Virus record (IMG/VR): IMGVR_UViG_3300035156_000206
Location: 124,001-188,000 of that record
Reading direction: 5' to 3' (one strand)
DNA: 64,000 nucleotides
Below the pieces are notes generated by a model. That model worked only from the letters and a program-made list of their open reading frames with translations. It was not told the DNA's origin and did not search any database. How positions within the stretch are numbered: the stretch's first letter is position 1; each line of letters opens with the position of its first letter. The position numbers and the translations under genes were made by a program. This document shows positions 3,488-60,046 of the stretch, one piece after another.

Positions 3488-3506
3488 TCTATACATTCTG
3501 CGCAAT

Positions 3507-3535
3507 AAAAAAGGACGCCTAGGCGTCCTTTTTTT
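3507..3535. terminator. Bidirectional terminator-like palindrome
   Basis: aaaaaaggacgcctaggcgtcctttttt between convergent genes. Confidence 0.75.
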
Positions 3536-31436: not shown

Positions 31437-31631
31437 TTATTTTAATCGGCCGTGTTCTGTGAGTACTTTGGATTCAGCAATATCGTACTCTATTCGAGCC
31501 TTTTCCGATTCAGCTGATGCAACTGCCAACTGAGCTTCCGCTTTCGCCAATGTATCTTCCACAGATGGTTCAGATTGGCTTCCACCACAAGCAACCAAAC
31601 ACAATAGTACTAGAACTGGTAGCGTCTTCAT
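31437..31631 (-). CDS. Small putative lipoprotein
   Basis: MKTLPVLVLLCLVA-CGG lipobox; ATGA overlap with the upstream gene. Confidence 0.65.
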   Translation of the reverse strand: MKTLPVLVLLCLVACGGSQSEPSVEDTLAKAEAQLAVASAESEKARIEYDIAESKVLTEHGRLK

Positions 31632-32350
31632 TGTACTGACTCCAACGATAAGTGTTTGTCCTCAACCGTCTTGGCATAGTCATACAACTTCTCAATATAC
31701 TTGTCACGACGCAGAATTTTGAATGCCAGGTTCTCAACCGAGAACTCACCGTCACGATCCAAGCCCATCTTCCTCATCTCTCGCAATCGGGTTTTTAATT
31801 TCTCGATCGTAGTGAGATTACACACTTTATTATGGATTATCCCGTCGATAGACGATTTCCATTTATCTGCCTTACTGATTACATACGAGTCGTTAATTTC
31901 GGGATTGGATTTCTTAGGCTTGACCAACCACTTGTTCCTCATAATGCTATACACACCTGACGATACATGAGGTTCCTTCTCACCTTGGACATACAACTCA
32001 ACGGGGAAGCCTTTGATCTTGATATCATGCTCAAGGTTCCATAGCTGCTTCTTAGCGTTGAATAGCTCCAAAGCTACCTCTTCATTCTCACAGCGTGACA
32101 AGTCTGCCATGATGTGAAGATCGACGTCTGACTGATCGTGCCACGTATAGTTGGCGAGACTCCCAGTTACAATCATATCAACCACAATTAGTTCACTTGA
32201 GTCCACAAAGTCGATGAACTGTTTTGCAATCGACTTCAGTGCAGTCTTAATCTCGGGCTTCATGACGGTCTCTTCCCATACAGCATGGTTGAGGTGACGC
32301 TTCTCATCAAGAGCGAACGCTGTTTCATTCAGGTATTGTTTAAATTTCAT
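31628..32350 (-). CDS. Pol-beta superfamily nucleotidyltransferase
   Basis: TGSLANY...SDVDLH (GS..DxD), VELYVQ; late promoter; MKFKQYLNE N-terminus. Confidence 0.75.
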   Translation of the reverse strand: MKFKQYLNETAFALDEKRHLNHAVWEETVMKPEIKTALKSIAKQFIDFVDSSELIVVDMIVTGSLANYTWHDQSDVDLHIMADLSRCENEEVALELFNAKKQLWNLEHDIKIKGFPVELYVQGEKEPHVSSGVYSIMRNKWLVKPKKSNPEINDSYVISKADKWKSSIDGIIHNKVCNLTTIEKLKTRLREMRKMGLDRDGEFSVENLAFKILRRDKYIEKLYDYAKTVEDKHLSLESVQ

Positions 32351-32394
32351 TTGGATTATCCTTGTGTGCATCCTATTTATGGTACAGACAAAAG

Positions 32395-32424
32395 AAAAGG
32401 AAGGTTGTTTCCAACCTTCCTTTT
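32395..32424. terminator. Terminator hairpin
   Basis: aaaaggaaggttg-tttc-caaccttcctttt. Confidence 0.7.
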
Positions 32425-32440
32425 GACACTCAGAACATCC

Positions 32441-32635
32441 TCAATACACTGGATGGGCGTTTTTCTTCTCAATCTCGAACCGTTCATCCAAGAACTCTTT
32501 GATCAGAACACGCTCGGCGTATGTACGCCACATCATCTCATCATACGATATTGCACCACGCATGAAGTATACCAGAGAGATCATAGACACAACCAAGCTT
32601 CTGGATTCAGCTCCCATCCTCTGGAGCATCTGCAT
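32441..32635 (-). CDS. Baseplate hub/tail assembly chaperone partner (gp51-like); probably a frameshift extension of the upstream gene
   Basis: Weak RBS; lies in the -1 frame after a T7 run at the end of the gp26-like gene. Confidence 0.6.
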   Translation of the reverse strand: MQMLQRMGAESRSLVVSMISLVYFMRGAISYDEMMWRTYAERVLIKEFLDERFEIEKKNAHPVY

Positions 32636-32664
32636 CTTCTCTTGAGGAGAACCCTGTCTGAGTA

Positions 32665-33492
32665 CTAGATAAAAAAACTAATCGGGTTCAGTGGTGTTGG
32701 GATGACCAACTCTTCACCACAGTCGATACACTTGATTGGCACGTTAAATTCAACGCCCCAGTCTGTGGTTCGGGTAGCTGCTTCTGAAATAGATTGCAGC
32801 CATTGGACAGGAAGCGACTTGAGCCACTCAACAATCATTGCACGATCGGAGGTGTCATCAACACGGTCAATCAAAATGGCTGCAGATGTCAGCAAACGAT
32901 TGAGCATGTCCGAGTGCGATTCACTGTCATCCGCTTGGGCGTGATGAATCTGTTCTGTCTTGTACACTTCGATCACGTCGTCGTATGTTGCAGGCTTGAA
33001 GTACACAACTTGCTTGTTCTCCAGTACATGTTGGTACGAAGATTTGATTGTGGTTGGATTTAACGACTTTGCCCCGCGCAGGAAAATGTCCAGCGCTAAT
33101 TCGTATGTGTGCTGCTCAGCATTTTCACACGTGTGGGTGTACGTGATATCAAATGTTGGACCGTACGACACTTTCTTGATGGCTACCAACAGATAGTCAA
33201 TGTCTTTGGCTGACAGCTCGCCCGGCTTCAGGATGCTTGGAATGCAGCGGCCGAATACTTCCTTGACAGCCTCACCGTTCAGGATCTTGTCGACTGATTT
33301 CATGATCAGCTCATCGATACCTGTCATTGGGTATACATGCACCTCGCCGTTCTTGACATCAGGAGCAAGTTCGCCATTGGTATAGAAGACGCCACCAGAC
33401 GGCAGAGTAAAAGACTCACCTGGGATGCGGACGCGCATCAACAGAGGATTAATTTGGGAAGGGATGCCAGTAGGTGGCAGGATTTGATCCAT
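32665..33492 (-). CDS. Baseplate hub assembly protein (T4 gp26-like)
   Basis: LPSGGVFY, VYPMT..DE, DIDYLLVAIKKVSYG, C-terminal CxxC; next to the tape measure gene. Confidence 0.8.
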   Translation of the reverse strand: MDQILPPTGIPSQINPLLMRVRIPGESFTLPSGGVFYTNGELAPDVKNGEVHVYPMTGIDELIMKSVDKILNGEAVKEVFGRCIPSILKPGELSAKDIDYLLVAIKKVSYGPTFDITYTHTCENAEQHTYELALDIFLRGAKSLNPTTIKSSYQHVLENKQVVYFKPATYDDVIEVYKTEQIHHAQADDSESHSDMLNRLLTSAAILIDRVDDTSDRAMIVEWLKSLPVQWLQSISEAATRTTDWGVEFNVPIKCIDCGEELVIPTPLNPISFFI

Positions 33493-33605: not shown

Positions 33606-36575
33606 ATGGCTACAGGTACACCAATCGCAGGCGGAACAATTGAGCAGTTAGCAGCAGCAATTGCACAGGCTATTAATCAGTCTGGTGGTGCTGGCCGTAA
33701 CTATAACCCAATCACGAACCAAGCATCCAAGCAAGATGATCCAGCAGCTCGTGTGGCGGCAATCCGAACTCACAAGACAGCAATCTCAGCTAATGAGCTG
33801 ATGAAAGAACTGGCTGAGGTCCAACGCAAGTCGATCCGAAGCAGCCAAGACTTAGAGCGTATGCTCGACTTCAACCGCAAGACACTCGGTCAAGCACTGA
33901 ACAAGTACGAGACATTTGCTGAAGCACAGAAGGAAATGGTAAAGGAACTGAACAAGCAGTTGAGTTCCGGTTCTGTTCCAGCAAGTGTAAAAGCATTAGC
34001 CGGATCGATTGACACACTCGAAGACGTCCTGAAGTTTAGTGATGCTGCCAAAGCAGCTGCTGAACTATCGAAGGCGATGAAGGACAGCCAGAAGACTGGT
34101 GAGAACATGGCCACGTTGGCCGAGACTATCTCCGACTTGAAGAAAGCTTTACCAGCAGGAAAGAGCCTGGCGGATGTAGATGCATCTCTGGATGCATTAG
34201 ACAAGCGCATGCAATCATTCCTGACTGCATTCAATGCACAGCAACAAGCAGATGGAAGCTACAAGTACCATGATGCTGCTGGTGCAGAACGCAGCCAAGC
34301 AGACCAAGATAAAATCAACAAGGCATTGCAAGCAATCGTTCAGAAGAGCCAGGTGGCAAAGAATGCTGCTAAGGCCGCTGAAGACCTCGCAATCAATGGA
34401 CACACTGCAGTAATCGAGGCCAATGTACGCTCTATGAAGCGTCTGGATGGAGTTGTAGCAGAAGCTGGCCGTCGCGTCAGTGCATGGGGAGTTAAAGTAA
34501 CATCAGCAGCTTGGGCAATTGACAAGCTGGCGGATGCTGCCGTCCACCTGTACCAATCACTGAAGACTGCAGCAGCAACCGGAACTGAGCGCAGCTTGGG
34601 TGGTGTTGCCGGCCGCGAAATGACAGCGCTGACGACAATGATCAGCAGTGAGACTATTCAAGAAGGCCAAAAGAATTACGCACAGCGTCGTAACATTGCT
34701 GGCCGTGAAGACTACGACAAATCACAGCGTCAAGGAACTTTCGACTTCTTCAAGCTGACAGGTGACTTGGATGAAGCTCACAGACAGTTCGGGTTGACTA
34801 ATGAGTTGATTGGTCGTCACGGTGTCAGCTTCCAGACAGCTATGAAGAGTACCCGCATGCTGATGGGGACGTTCAATGAGCTCACGATGATGACTGGTAT
34901 GACCGTTGGTGAAATCAACGCGATGAACCAAGAGCTCGCATCTGGTAACGACTACCGTCAAACACTTGCAGGACTGAACGAAAAAGAACGCGCTATGGCG
35001 CTTGTTGGACTTGACCTGATGGTTAAAGAGAATGCCATCCGTGGTATCTCGATCCAACAAACCAAAGAGATGTTGAAAGCGACACAAGCTGAGTCAAATC
35101 CATTCAGCCCTAAGTCTCGCATGAAAGCGGCCGCGAAGTTGCGTCTGCTTGGTGCATCACAAGGATTGGATGTTGAATCAGCTGCACGTGTGATTGATGC
35201 AGGTGGTATTGCTCAACGTCGTGCAGAACTGTCTCAATCGGGAATGAGCCCTCAGGCCATTGAAGCTGAGATGAACAAGGTACAGAGACAAGAACAATCT
35301 CTGGGAACCAAGAATAGTAAAGACATGGGTGGACGTGTAACCGCTCAAGGTTTGGCGATTGAAGCTATTGGTGGAAAGATGCCAGAGCTGAAGTCGTACT
35401 TTGATGGTACACGTGACGTTAGTGCAATCGAGGGCAACCAGATGCTTGGTAAAGCCGCGGACGAGTTCAACGTTGGTGTCAATAAGTTCGTTGCTGGTGT
35501 AGGACTGATGGGTGTGAATGGTGCTAAGAATACAGCATCTAACCCTTACGTGCAAGCTATCATCGCTGGTGCCGGATATCTATTGTTCCGAAAAATGGGT
35601 GGACCAGGAATCGCCAAGCTTCTTCCCGGCATTAGTGGATTGCTTAAAAAAGTTCTTCCTGGTGCTAAGGGTGCGGCTGCCGGTGCCACAGGGGCGGCTG
35701 GTGCTCTATCAGGAGCCCGCACGGCCTCTGGAGCCGCAGCTGTAGTCCGAAGCAGCTCCGGTGCACTAATGAATACCGTACGTGCAATCATCCCTGTGCT
35801 TGGAGCAAAAGCAGCAACTGCTGCGGCCGCTATTCCAGCCGCAGCATCATCTGCACGGACAATGGCGGCAGCCGCAGTGGCTGCATCGGCAGCTGCTCGT
35901 CCTATCATCCCTAAGATTCCTACTCAAGTTGGTATGGGTTCAAAGGCACTGGGCGTGCTTGGTAAGTTAGCTACACCGCTTGCCGTATTAGGAACTGGTT
36001 TATCAATATACGGTCACGCAACAAGTGATGAAACAGCGAAAGAAAAGACAGAAGCGATCTCAGGTGATGTGGGTGGATTAGCTGGCGGGTTGGCAGGTGC
36101 TGGTTACGGCGCCGCAATTGGTACAGCAATTTTCCCAGGGGTTGGTACAGCAGTTGGTGGTATTCTGGGTGGACTGATTGGTATGTGGGCTGGTGATAAG
36201 GTAGGCACTGGTGTTGGCATGGGCATCAACGCGACAGGTGTCAACGACCCTTCTCAGCCTGGCGTGACGGGTCCAAGTGTAAATACGCCATCTGATCAAA
36301 CACAGTCAACAGCAGTAGTAGATGCTAACGGTAATGTAACTGGTTACGTTACACCTGACGCACCACAAGCTGTCGATCCTTCAATTATGCTGACACAAGC
36401 TGTAACGCAAATGAATATAACCTTGGGCTCAATTCACACTCTCTTAGCAGCCTCAGCTGGTGAAATGAGTGGATCTAGCGAAGCCGCCCTCGAACAACAG
36501 AAGCGCTTAGCTCGTGCTTTAAAAAATGCTGGCATGGGTAGTGTAGCCCCAGCATCAACAGCATACAATGCTTAA
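33606..36575 (+). CDS. Tape measure protein
   Basis: 989 aa, Ala-rich and helical; C-terminal glycine zipper (GGLAGGLAGAGYGAAIGTAIFPGVGTAVGG); AATAAATA promoter. Confidence 0.75.
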   Translation: MATGTPIAGGTIEQLAAAIAQAINQSGGAGRNYNPITNQASKQDDPAARVAAIRTHKTAISANELMKELAEVQRKSIRSSQDLERMLDFNRKTLGQALNKYETFAEAQKEMVKELNKQLSSGSVPASVKALAGSIDTLEDVLKFSDAAKAAAELSKAMKDSQKTGENMATLAETISDLKKALPAGKSLADVDASLDALDKRMQSFLTAFNAQQQADGSYKYHDAAGAERSQADQDKINKALQAIVQKSQVAKNAAKAAEDLAINGHTAVIEANVRSMKRLDGVVAEAGRRVSAWGVKVTSAAWAIDKLADAAVHLYQSLKTAAATGTERSLGGVAGREMTALTTMISSETIQEGQKNYAQRRNIAGREDYDKSQRQGTFDFFKLTGDLDEAHRQFGLTNELIGRHGVSFQTAMKSTRMLMGTFNELTMMTGMTVGEINAMNQELASGNDYRQTLAGLNEKERAMALVGLDLMVKENAIRGISIQQTKEMLKATQAESNPFSPKSRMKAAAKLRLLGASQGLDVESAARVIDAGGIAQRRAELSQSGMSPQAIEAEMNKVQRQEQSLGTKNSKDMGGRVTAQGLAIEAIGGKMPELKSYFDGTRDVSAIEGNQMLGKAADEFNVGVNKFVAGVGLMGVNGAKNTASNPYVQAIIAGAGYLLFRKMGGPGIAKLLPGISGLLKKVLPGAKGAAAGATGAAGALSGARTASGAAAVVRSSSGALMNTVRAIIPVLGAKAATAAAAIPAAASSARTMAAAAVAASAAARPIIPKIPTQVGMGSKALGVLGKLATPLAVLGTGLSIYGHATSDETAKEKTEAISGDVGGLAGGLAGAGYGAAIGTAIFPGVGTAVGGILGGLIGMWAGDKVGTGVGMGINATGVNDPSQPGVTGPSVNTPSDQTQSTAVVDANGNVTGYVTPDAPQAVDPSIMLTQAVTQMNITLGSIHTLLAASAGEMSGSSEAALEQQKRLARALKNAGMGSVAPASTAYNA

Positions 36576-57182: not shown

Positions 57183-57776
57183 ATGGCAAATATTAACGAC
57201 ATGGGTCTCCCGTTACCAGGTGGTTCTGGAATGGGCATCTTGCACCCAAAGCTGAAAAAGAACTTCATGGTTCAATTCATCAACATCGGCTTTGTAGGCT
57301 CGCGTGACCTGTCAATGCAAGCAATCTCAGTAACGCGTCCTAAGGTCTCGTTTGCTGAAGTAGAACTACACCGCTACAACTCGATCTCATGGTATGCTGG
57401 TAAGCAATCGTATGAGCCACTGTCGATCGTTATCCAAGATAACTACTCGAACGGTGCAACTCGTATCATCCAGTCACAACTTGAGCGTCAACAAAAACTG
57501 ATTGGTGCTGATAGTGGTCCTTTCCTGGCTACTGCTCCAGATGGTAACACGTACAAATTCGCTGTCAAGCTGACCCAGCTGGATGGTGGTACGCAAGTAC
57601 TGGAAGAGTGGAACTATGAAGGTTGCTTCATCCAAGCAGCCGACTACGATACAGTGGAATACTCATCGAGCGATCCTGTGACGATTACATTGACGATTCG
57701 TTTCGACAATGCGTTCCAAGTGTTTGGTGCTACTCCATCAAGTGGTCAGTCACTGGGCGGTAACGCTCCACGCTAA
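57183..57776 (+). CDS. Tail tube protein (T4 gp19-like)
   Basis: VTRPKVSF, YAGKQSYEP, W.YEGCF, ITLTIRFDNA; follows the sheath gene. Confidence 0.92.
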   Translation: MANINDMGLPLPGGSGMGILHPKLKKNFMVQFINIGFVGSRDLSMQAISVTRPKVSFAEVELHRYNSISWYAGKQSYEPLSIVIQDNYSNGATRIIQSQLERQQKLIGADSGPFLATAPDGNTYKFAVKLTQLDGGTQVLEEWNYEGCFIQAADYDTVEYSSSDPVTITLTIRFDNAFQVFGATPSSGQSLGGNAPR

Positions 57777-59587: not shown

Positions 59588-60046
59588 ATGGAAACAAAAA
59601 TCGTTGAGGTGCAATTTCAGCACCCTGCAGAACAAATATTCGATCTCGAGCCAGGGTCTACTGTAATTGACCAAGTGGTGACTACGTCTCCTCCCGAAGA
59701 GCAGCCTGTACAGTACGATGACAAGGACCAAGAGATTAATGATCAGCTCCAATTGGTATTCAACGCTGCATATGGCACGTTTGAATCTCAGCGGATGCTA
59801 ACAGAAGGAATGAACCCACAGTTTCAGAACCGTGCAATGGAAGTCGCCGCTCAGTTCCTAAATACAGCCTTGGCTGCAGTGAATGCAAAGAGTCAGTTCA
59901 AGCAGGCCAAAGACAAGATTGTCAAGCCTACCGGGAACGTCAATACCACAACTAACAACCTGATCATGGACCGGGACGATATGTTGAAGATGTTGATGGA
60001 ACAAAAAAAGAACGCAGAACGAATTATCGATCAAGAGGAACAATAA
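59588..60046 (+). CDS. Terminase small subunit (gp16-like)
   Basis: RAMEVAAQFL, TTNNLIMDRDDMLKML; upstream of TerL. Confidence 0.75.
   Translation: METKIVEVQFQHPAEQIFDLEPGSTVIDQVVTTSPPEEQPVQYDDKDQEINDQLQLVFNAAYGTFESQRMLTEGMNPQFQNRAMEVAAQFLNTALAAVNAKSQFKQAKDKIVKPTGNVNTTTNNLIMDRDDMLKMLMEQKKNAERIIDQEEQ

Follow-up and report, generated by a model that had tools for sequence, protein, structure and literature searches.

Evidence for a conserved -1 frameshift that would yield gp26-like and gp51-like proteins from one gene of a jumbo T4-like phage

T4 is the reference contractile-tail phage, yet the roles of gp26 and gp51 in hub assembly have stayed obscure for decades. In a 64,000-nucleotide stretch of IMG/VR record IMGVR_UViG_3300035156_000206 (positions 124,001 to 188,000; hereafter the window), a gp26-like gene ends in a run of seven T's and is followed by a small open reading frame (ORF) in the -1 frame. 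This raises the question of whether the two ORFs are separate genes, or whether one gene encodes a short and a long tail-assembly protein through a programmed -1 frameshift, as in the lambda G/GT chaperone pair. Here we show that comparative evidence for a programmed frameshift is strong, and that such a frameshift is very probably used, although the slip itself is inferred, as there is no experimental evidence for the trans-frame protein in any of these phages. We found no description of a gp26/gp51 frameshift in the literature searched, and no record examined annotates a frameshift join. Current annotations of hundreds of jumbo-phage and cyanophage genomes miss the long product, either by omitting the small ORF or by calling it an independent gene.

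The slippery site and the open -1 frame

The first-pass annotation, which proposed a -1 slip at the T-run joining the gp26-like gene to the downstream ORF, described the sequence correctly. The minus strand reads AGT TTT TTT ATC TAG, and after a -1 slip on T_TTT_TTT the reading continues without a stop into the 64-aa ORF, with the predicted junction NPISFF-YLVLR. The -1 frame is closed by a TAG immediately before the T-run and has no ATG, GTG or TTG before codon 13, so the linker can only be read by shifting frame. Features of the locus are summarized in Table 1.

Table 1. Coordinates of features of the gp26-like locus, given as positions of the window.
Position	Strand	Feature	Remarks
32665..33492	-	gp26-like gene, 0 frame	275-aa short form; T4 baseplate hub assembly protein family
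32678..32680	-	TAG in the -1 frame	Immediately upstream of the T-run
32671..32677	-	Slippery heptamer T_TTT_TTT	In phase (AG-T TTT TTT), on Phe273-Phe274
32665..32667	-	0-frame stop codon TAG	One codon after the heptamer
32636..32671	-	Linker, -1 frame (YLVLRQGSPQEK)	12 codons, no start codon
32441..32671	-	-1 frame extension	76 codons plus stop; joined to residues 1-274 gives a predicted 350-aa long form (gp51-like)
32441..32635	-	Small ORF within the extension	64 aa
32627..32635	-	Two in-frame ATGs (32635-32633 and 32629-32627)	Possible minor independent start; the second is extension codon 15
32395..32424	-	Terminator-like hairpin	13 pairs followed by a T-rich tail, just after the extension's stop
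33606..36575	+	Tape-measure-like protein, divergent neighbour	989 aa; presumed client
57183-57776		Tail tube gene	About 24 kb away

The site is more than chance would give. Only 3 T7/A7 runs occur in the window, against 10.2 expected from shuffles, Phe is encoded by TTT in only 31% of cases in this genome, and of 19 Phe-Phe pairs in 26 long ORFs this is the only one with an in-phase T_TTT_TTY. An independent assembly of the source run is identical with no indel, and a related freshwater contig spans the run without a gap. The hairpin following the extension would end the gp26/extension transcription unit, and no minus-strand promoter-like site was found between the two ORFs. The divergent neighbour matches tape-measure families phrog_794 (3e-17) and phrog_167 (2e-11), and a large divergent neighbour in the same position is annotated in RaK2 as tape-measure-like and in PA5oct, 121Q and CBB as a structural protein.

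Conservation of the heptamer and of the extension

A blastn search of the region against phage records revealed no nucleotide-level relative, and a scan with the single protein gave only 6 loci, after which the profile was rebuilt from eligible loci. All 25 distinct gp26 loci that carry this extension in the -1 frame (the window, 9 metagenomic relatives, 12 Rak2-like or other jumbo phages, 2 cyanophages, and Aeh1) keep an in-phase T_TTT_TTY heptamer on the invariant Phe-Phe pair. While the residue preceding Phe-Phe is S, A, H, V, R, D, T, Y or N, its codon always ends in T, which is conservation at the nucleotide level and runs against the codon bias of this genome, where third-position T is 28%. 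T4, KARL-1, KFS-EC, and Aeromonas phage 25 have no -1 extension after gene 26, and none has the heptamer; T4 keeps Phe-Phe but spells it TTC TTT, and the other three do not keep the pair. In close relatives of the window the 0-frame stop is TAG, TAA or TGA, while the -1 reading stays Y-L-(V/T/I)-L.

The linker has a coding signature in the -1 frame only, with a pN/pS of 0.45 against 1.05 and 1.86 in the other frames (extension codons 3-14 in 7 relatives), and the extension has a pN/pS of 0.24. Ten distant extensions align without gaps from the first codon after the heptamer. Some relatives have no start codon for the extension: that of PA5oct has no Met, and the first Met is at position 48 of 82 in RsoM2USA and 57 of 80 in RAS14. 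Gene callers pick variable starts across the 246 clusters of the extension family. Two natural fusions, P0256 and P0268, carry body and extension in one frame, and P0268 sits beside a paralogue that lacks the extension. It is important to note that the window has no stimulatory RNA structure downstream of the heptamer (z +1.58) and that its subclade has no conserved one, so efficiency may be low, although hairpins with z from -2.3 to -6.7 occur in 5 distant relatives and such a structure does not appear obligatory, given that lambda G/GT seems to lack one.

The gene most likely encodes two proteins sharing residues 1-274. Most ribosomes would terminate at TAG, giving the short form, while a fraction would slip back one base on U_UUU_UUU when decoding Phe273-Phe274 and read 76 more codons, giving the long form. 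We hold this explanation with high confidence. The alternative that the small ORF is an independent gene, translated from its own start (ATG 32635 or 32629) or by termination-reinitiation after the TAG, with the T-run a by-product of Phe-Phe codons, has some support. Phe-Phe itself is conserved for protein reasons, which fixes part of the T-run, the ATG at extension codon 15 is conserved in the close subclade, cyanophage S-SSM6a has an ATG just after the stop, Cygsa01 appears to use a TAATG overlap instead of a heptamer, and most records annotate the small ORF as a separate gene. Some independent initiation is therefore possible, but it is unlikely to be the main route, as the ATG at 32635 is not conserved among close relatives, the wobble T and the TTT first codon are kept in 25 of 25 loci, the linker upstream of any start is under purifying selection in the -1 frame, and the domain appears to be an in-frame C-terminal domain in gp51 and is one in the two natural fusions.

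Transcriptional slippage, in which RNA polymerase would add one U on the T-run, is likewise considered unlikely, albeit without RNA data, as only assembled contigs of DNA runs were found. Runs of 7-9 T can cause polymerase stuttering, RsoM2USA has T9, and the window lacks a stimulatory structure; however, 13 of the 25 loci have only T6 followed by C, which is short for polymerase slippage but is a canonical X_XXY_YYZ heptamer, and strong hairpins lie a few bases downstream in several relatives, as expected for ribosomal frameshifting. A sequencing or assembly error, or a pseudogene of a single 350-aa ORF, is very unlikely. Although homopolymers are error-prone and two relatives do have in-frame fusions, the same out-of-frame arrangement occurs in 25 independent genomes from many laboratories and platforms, none of the 123 gp26-like clusters is long enough to be fused, the independent assembly gives the same T7, and the in-frame fusions have different junction sequences.

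Relationship to gp26, gp51 and known frameshifted systems

The short form matches PF12322 (4.3e-15; 56 bits, cut-off 24.5) and phrog_150 (5e-17, profile positions 10-222 of 282), and all 123 homologues carry PF12322. C255, C258, F273, and F274 are invariant in one sequence set (A1), which includes T4 gp26, and C122, C255, C258 (zinc-ribbon-like), F273, and F274 are at least 90% conserved in another (A4). The gp26/gp51 idea of the first-pass annotation appears to be right in a sharper form than stated, as the 64-aa ORF is not a whole gp51 but appears to correspond to its C-terminal domain, such that the frameshift product as a whole would be the gp51 equivalent. T4 gp51, a full-length paralogue of gp26, matches phrog_150 over positions 3-281, and in Aeh1, S-WAM1, S-SSM6a, and Cygsa01 that profile is split between gp26 (about 5-237) and the adjacent other-frame piece (about 215-281). 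Two-gene genomes have one long and one short copy, whereas the window's genome has a single copy. The homology of the window's extension to gp51 nevertheless rests on profile comparisons of moderate strength. Comparison of the extension family with 91 gp51 C-terminal domains by hhalign gave a collinear match (probability 82.8%, E 9.4e-6), but a 4-sequence profile gave 33%, the whole of T4 gp51 gave no meaningful hit (1.3%), phrog_634 was hit by 3 of 58 members, and the window's own extension had no direct hmmscan hit to the gp51-type C-terminal families (phrog_634, PF28602). T4 gp51 is not related to the 247-aa nucleotidyltransferase-like gene downstream (BLASTP E 0.043).

In an AF2 model of the gp26-like protein (pLDDT 91), the body is predicted to comprise two domains resembling tail assembly chaperones plus a zinc ribbon. 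HK97 gp13, YqbN, and Rbstp2171 (2OB9, 3KLU and 3FGX), the solved chaperones of this kind (PMC9603447), rank 1-3 of 48,161 chains (Z 6.0, 5.9 and 5.7), covering model residues 9-120 and 146-244. This support is weak, as such Z scores are individually in the range of chance matches and below the tool's caution level, and Foldseek found no match in the PDB. The extension, a small predicted helical domain, is predicted to dock on the most conserved surface of the body, or, in trans, on a short-form molecule. The docking score was 0.62 against a best control of 0.00, a mark reached by 58 of 80 solved complexes and 2 of 110 mismatched pairs; the runs agree in at least 64% of contacts, and the partner's pLDDT is at least 72. 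In this single complex prediction no contact between the extension and the tail tube protein was reported, although a missing contact is not evidence of absence. By analogy with T4 genetics and with lambda G/GT, the two forms may act together as non-structural factors that assemble the hub and tape-measure complex encoded next door, chaperone activity on the tape measure protein being an inference.

It is about as likely as not that gp26 and gp51 are the long-missing tail assembly chaperones of the T4 superfamily, made in a short and a long form. One gene with a -1 frameshift would then be the widespread, probably ancestral, arrangement, seen in jumbo Rak2-like phages, cyanophages, and Aeh1, which Tevenvirinae-type phages would have resolved into two paralogous genes, and the extension would act by capping the conserved surface of the body rather than by recruiting tube protein as lambda's T domain does.

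Compared with lambda gpG/gpGT and the conserved -1 frameshift of tail assembly chaperone genes (Levin et al. 1993; Xu, Hendrix and Duda 2004), the locus shares the apparent gene expression logic (a short and a long protein with a common N-terminus, from a -1 slip on a heptamer near the end of the short ORF), the position next to the tape measure gene and, weakly, the predicted fold. In addition, the gp26-like protein was not detected in XacN1 or RaK2 virions (PMC5852040) and is absent from the CBB virion table (PMC5259590). It differs in belonging to another sequence family (only PF12322 is hit, with no Pfam tail-assembly-chaperone hit), in the tandem of two chaperone-like domains plus a zinc ribbon predicted for its body, in being divergent from the tape measure gene rather than directly upstream of it between tube and tape measure, and in an extension predicted to bind its own body.

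With T4 gp26 the short form shares PF12322, phrog_150 positions 10-236, and the terminal Phe-Phe, and the predicted long form would match gp51 in being the same family plus a C-terminal domain; in T4 both are needed for hub assembly, and gp51 is absent from the particle (PMC3004832). However, T4 uses two divergent paralogous genes without a slippery site (GAG TTC TTT GAG), and the window's extension is longer (76 aa against about 50 aa) and only remotely similar. The small ORFs annotated as gp51 or baseplate hub assembly catalyst after gp26 in cyanophages and phiW-14-like phages (phrog_634) have the same position and -1 frame relative to gp26 and an apparently homologous domain (S-WAM1 3e-30, Aeh1 3e-13 and Cygsa01 9e-12 against phrog_634), but are annotated as free-standing genes. 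In E. coli dnaX (tau/gamma), a -1 slip on a homopolymeric heptamer likewise appears to set the ratio of two forms sharing an N-terminus, although there the shifted product is probably the shorter one and the protein family is unrelated; one locus, L018, resembles dnaX in that the 0 frame gives the long form and a -1 slip would meet TAA at once.

The gene end and its genomic context

The minus strand across the gene end reads AGT TTT TTT ATC TAG in the 0 frame, where it closes a 275-aa ORF, and TAG TTT TTT TAT CTA GTA in the -1 frame, which runs without a stop into a 64-aa ORF. The observation made in the first-pass annotation, that a -1 slip on a run of seven T's would join these two ORFs through a stop-free reading, is therefore confirmed. 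Given that the -1 frame is closed by a TAG directly before the T-run and holds no ATG, GTG or TTG until codon 13, the 12-codon linker is readable only by a shift of frame. The predicted long product comprises residues 1-274 plus 76 residues (350 aa). Coordinates of the features discussed are summarized in the table below.

Features discussed in this section and their coordinates (in the window unless another locus is named)
Feature	Coordinates	Strand
Gene end read in both frames	32680-32661	-
275-aa gp26-like ORF (0 frame)	32665..33492	-
64-aa ORF in the -1 frame	32441..32635	-
Divergent tape-measure-like gene	33606..36575	
247-aa ORF with weak nucleotidyltransferase signature	31628-32371	-
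Hairpin flanked by A6 and T7, AAAAAAGGACGCCTAGGCGTCCTTTTTTT	3505-3535	
Heptamer A_AAA_AAG	60003-60009	+
Small-terminase-like ORF containing that heptamer	59588..60046	+
In-frame body-extension fusion, locus L018	225-1247	
Two adjacent PF12322 paralogues, contig L019	2084-3978	
gp26 end of Pseudomonas phage Cygsa01, locus L023	1305-1312	

T7/A7 runs are depleted in this window (3 found against 10.2 expected), and one of the other two is a terminator tail. A symmetric hairpin flanked by A6 and T7 lies between converging ORFs and looks like a bidirectional intrinsic terminator. In 26 long ORFs, Phe is encoded by TTT in only 31% of cases, and among 19 Phe-Phe pairs the only in-phase T_TTT_TTY is the one considered here. 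A dnaX-type heptamer, A_AAA_AAG, does lie in phase (CAA AAA AAG) about 40 nt before the stop of a small-terminase-like ORF (phrog_445 at 7e-6); however, the -1 frame there stays open for only about 17 codons, and its occurrence is probably due to chance. An independent assembly of the source run (a biocrust metagenome) agrees base for base, and a related freshwater contig spans the run without a gap.

The 275-aa protein belongs to the T4 gp26 family (PF12322 at 4e-15, phrog_150 at 5e-17). The divergent neighbour is tape-measure-like and is followed by the portal, protease and major head genes, with sheath, tube and terminase genes lying further on. The window is part of a 292-kb virus record, and its nearest named relatives are jumbo myoviruses, namely RsoM2USA (39% identity), then Xoo-sp13, CM1, PA5oct, Atu_ph07 and the Rak2-like phages. 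Just downstream of the gp26/extension unit, after a terminator, lies a 247-aa protein with a weak nucleotidyltransferase signature (PF01909 at 2e-5, phrog_36119 at 1e-52). A gene of similar size is present in the same position in loci L026-L031 (there with faint or weak PF01909 hits), RAS14, XacN1 and Xoo-sp13, while RaK2, 121Q and PA5oct have none there. It is not related to T4 gp51.

Conservation of the heptamer and of the -1 frame

The gene end was examined in 25 distinct loci that carry the extension in the -1 frame. These included the window, six relatives at 56-75% identity, three IMG/VR loci, nine phages (RsoM2USA, RAS14, XacN1, Xoo-sp13, Atu_ph07, PA5oct, RaK2, 121Q, and SCTP-2), Vibrio phage 2.275.O, Phosso and CBB, cyanophages S-WAM1 and S-SSM6a, and the straboviral phage Aeh1. 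Every one has T_TTT_TTY in phase on the Phe-Phe pair, in the form of T7 then A in 11 loci, T6 then C in 13, and T9 then C in one. While part of the run is explained by the protein, as Phe-Phe is invariant in the protein family, the residue before it is S, A, H, V, R, D, T, Y or N, and its codon always ends in T. The 0-frame tail after the heptamer varies from 1 to 11 codons, and the stop codon varies even among close relatives.

Sequence comparisons further support translation of the -1 frame. Ten distant extensions align without a gap from the first codon after the heptamer. Among seven close relatives, extension codons 3-14, which lie after the 0-frame stop and before any conserved Met, have a pN/pS of 0.45 in the -1 frame, against 1.05 and 1.86 in the other frames, and the rest of the extension gives 0.24. 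A profile of the extension finds 246 clusters in 1.84 billion proteins, nearly all of which are short ORFs whose called starts fall at many different positions, and none of the 123 gp26-like clusters is long enough to be a fusion.

With respect to independent initiation of the small ORF, the window's ATG at 32635 is replaced by I, V, Y, Q, I or R in relatives, and a Met at codon 15 is conserved in that subclade only. The PA5oct extension has no Met at all, and the first Met is found at 48 of 82 in RsoM2USA and 57 of 80 in RAS14. Cygsa01, a phiW-14-like Pseudomonas phage, is an exception, in that its gp26 ends ATT TTC ACC TAATG, without a slippery heptamer, and the gp51-like small ORF starts at an ATG that overlaps the stop, which suggests translational coupling rather than frameshifting in this lineage. 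A programmed -1 frameshift yielding gp26-like and gp51-like forms remains the best explanation, and we hold frameshifting itself to be very probable; that it is ribosomal rather than transcriptional is likely, although not shown. No downstream RNA structure was found in the window (z +1.6), nor a conserved one in its subclade, whereas several distant relatives have strong hairpins a few bases after the heptamer, with z from -2.3 to -6.7. A 13-pair terminator-like hairpin follows the extension's stop, and no promoter-like site separates the two ORFs.

In-frame fusions and the link to T4 gp51

Natural fusions of body and extension were also identified. The fusion protein P0256 (340 aa, seen in two samples) joins them in frame at GAT CAA TTT TTT AAC. 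In this fusion (locus L018), a -1 slip at CAA TTT TTT AAC would read TAA at once, and the arrangement may be inverted, with the long form in the 0 frame and the short form made by slippage, as in dnaX. A second fusion protein, P0268 (325 aa, on a 196-kb metagenomic phage contig, L019), joins body and extension at AAT ATA TTC CGG, without a slippery site, and sits immediately after a paralogous 305-aa PF12322 gene that lacks both the extension and the C-terminal cysteine pair. In that phage, then, the short and long forms are two genes, an independent solution like that of T4 genes 26 and 51.

T4 gp26 ends ...KEFFELL, with Phe-Phe spelled TTC TTT; its -1 frame closes at once, and gene 25 follows. 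T4 gp51 matches the same PHROG as gp26, but over the whole profile (positions 3-281 of 282, E 2e-86), while gp26 and the window's protein stop near position 223-236. The -1 ORFs of S-WAM1, Aeh1, and Cygsa01 match phrog_634, the family of gp51's C-terminal part (3e-30, 3e-13, and 9e-12, respectively). T4 gp51 homologues (proteins P0271-P0362) carry a precomputed Pfam domain, PF28602.1, presumably a recent model of the gp51 C-terminal domain. Whole-genome searches with phrog_150 revealed two arrangements. T4, KARL-1, KFS-EC, and Aeromonas phage 25 have two genes, one long and one short, and no heptamer, while Aeh1, S-WAM1, S-SSM6a, and Cygsa01 have one gene plus an adjacent other-frame piece covering profile positions 215-281, the heptamer being present in all of these but Cygsa01. 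RaK2, Atu_ph07, and the window's genome, in which the heptamer is present, gave one match only. The window's own extension family is more remote; it aligns collinearly with a profile of 91 gp51 C-terminal domains at 83% probability and E 9e-6, but at only 33% probability against a 4-sequence profile.

Predicted fold and comparison with tail assembly chaperones

The AF2 model of the 275-aa protein is confident (pLDDT 91). Foldseek finds no PDB relative, and in BFVD finds only 'baseplate hub (assembly)' proteins, from many myovirus groups. A Foldseek-independent search of 48,161 PDB representatives ranks HK97 gp13 (2OB9, Z 6.0, model residues 9-114), YqbN (3KLU, Z 5.9, residues 146-244), and Rbstp2171 (3FGX, Z 5.7, residues 19-120) first, second, and third. 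These three are the solved tail assembly chaperones of this kind (PMC9603447). While each Z is modest, the ranking is specific and suggests a tandem of two chaperone-like domains.

In a three-chain model of the tube protein, the body, and the extension, the extension is predicted to dock on the body with a score of 0.62 against a best control of 0.00, a mark reached by 58 of 80 solved complexes and 2 of 110 mismatched pairs. The runs agree in at least 64% of contacts, and the partner's pLDDT is at least 72. The modelled interface joins the extension's conserved E53-R54 region to the body's near-invariant P55...D60-E61 motif, and places the extension's first residues beside the body's C-terminus, as a covalent link would require. 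No tube contact was reported in this model.

None of the 21 annotated records examined annotates a join, and no paper describing this frameshift was found, although prior description cannot be excluded given that subscription journals were not covered. T4 gp26 and gp51 are listed as hub assembly chaperones, and gp51 is absent from the particle (PMC3004832); the gp26-like protein was not detected in XacN1 or RaK2 virions (PMC5852040) and is not in the CBB virion table (PMC5259590). While the chaperone function and the partner of the extension are inferences, the analogy with G/GT holds for expression logic and, less firmly, for fold.
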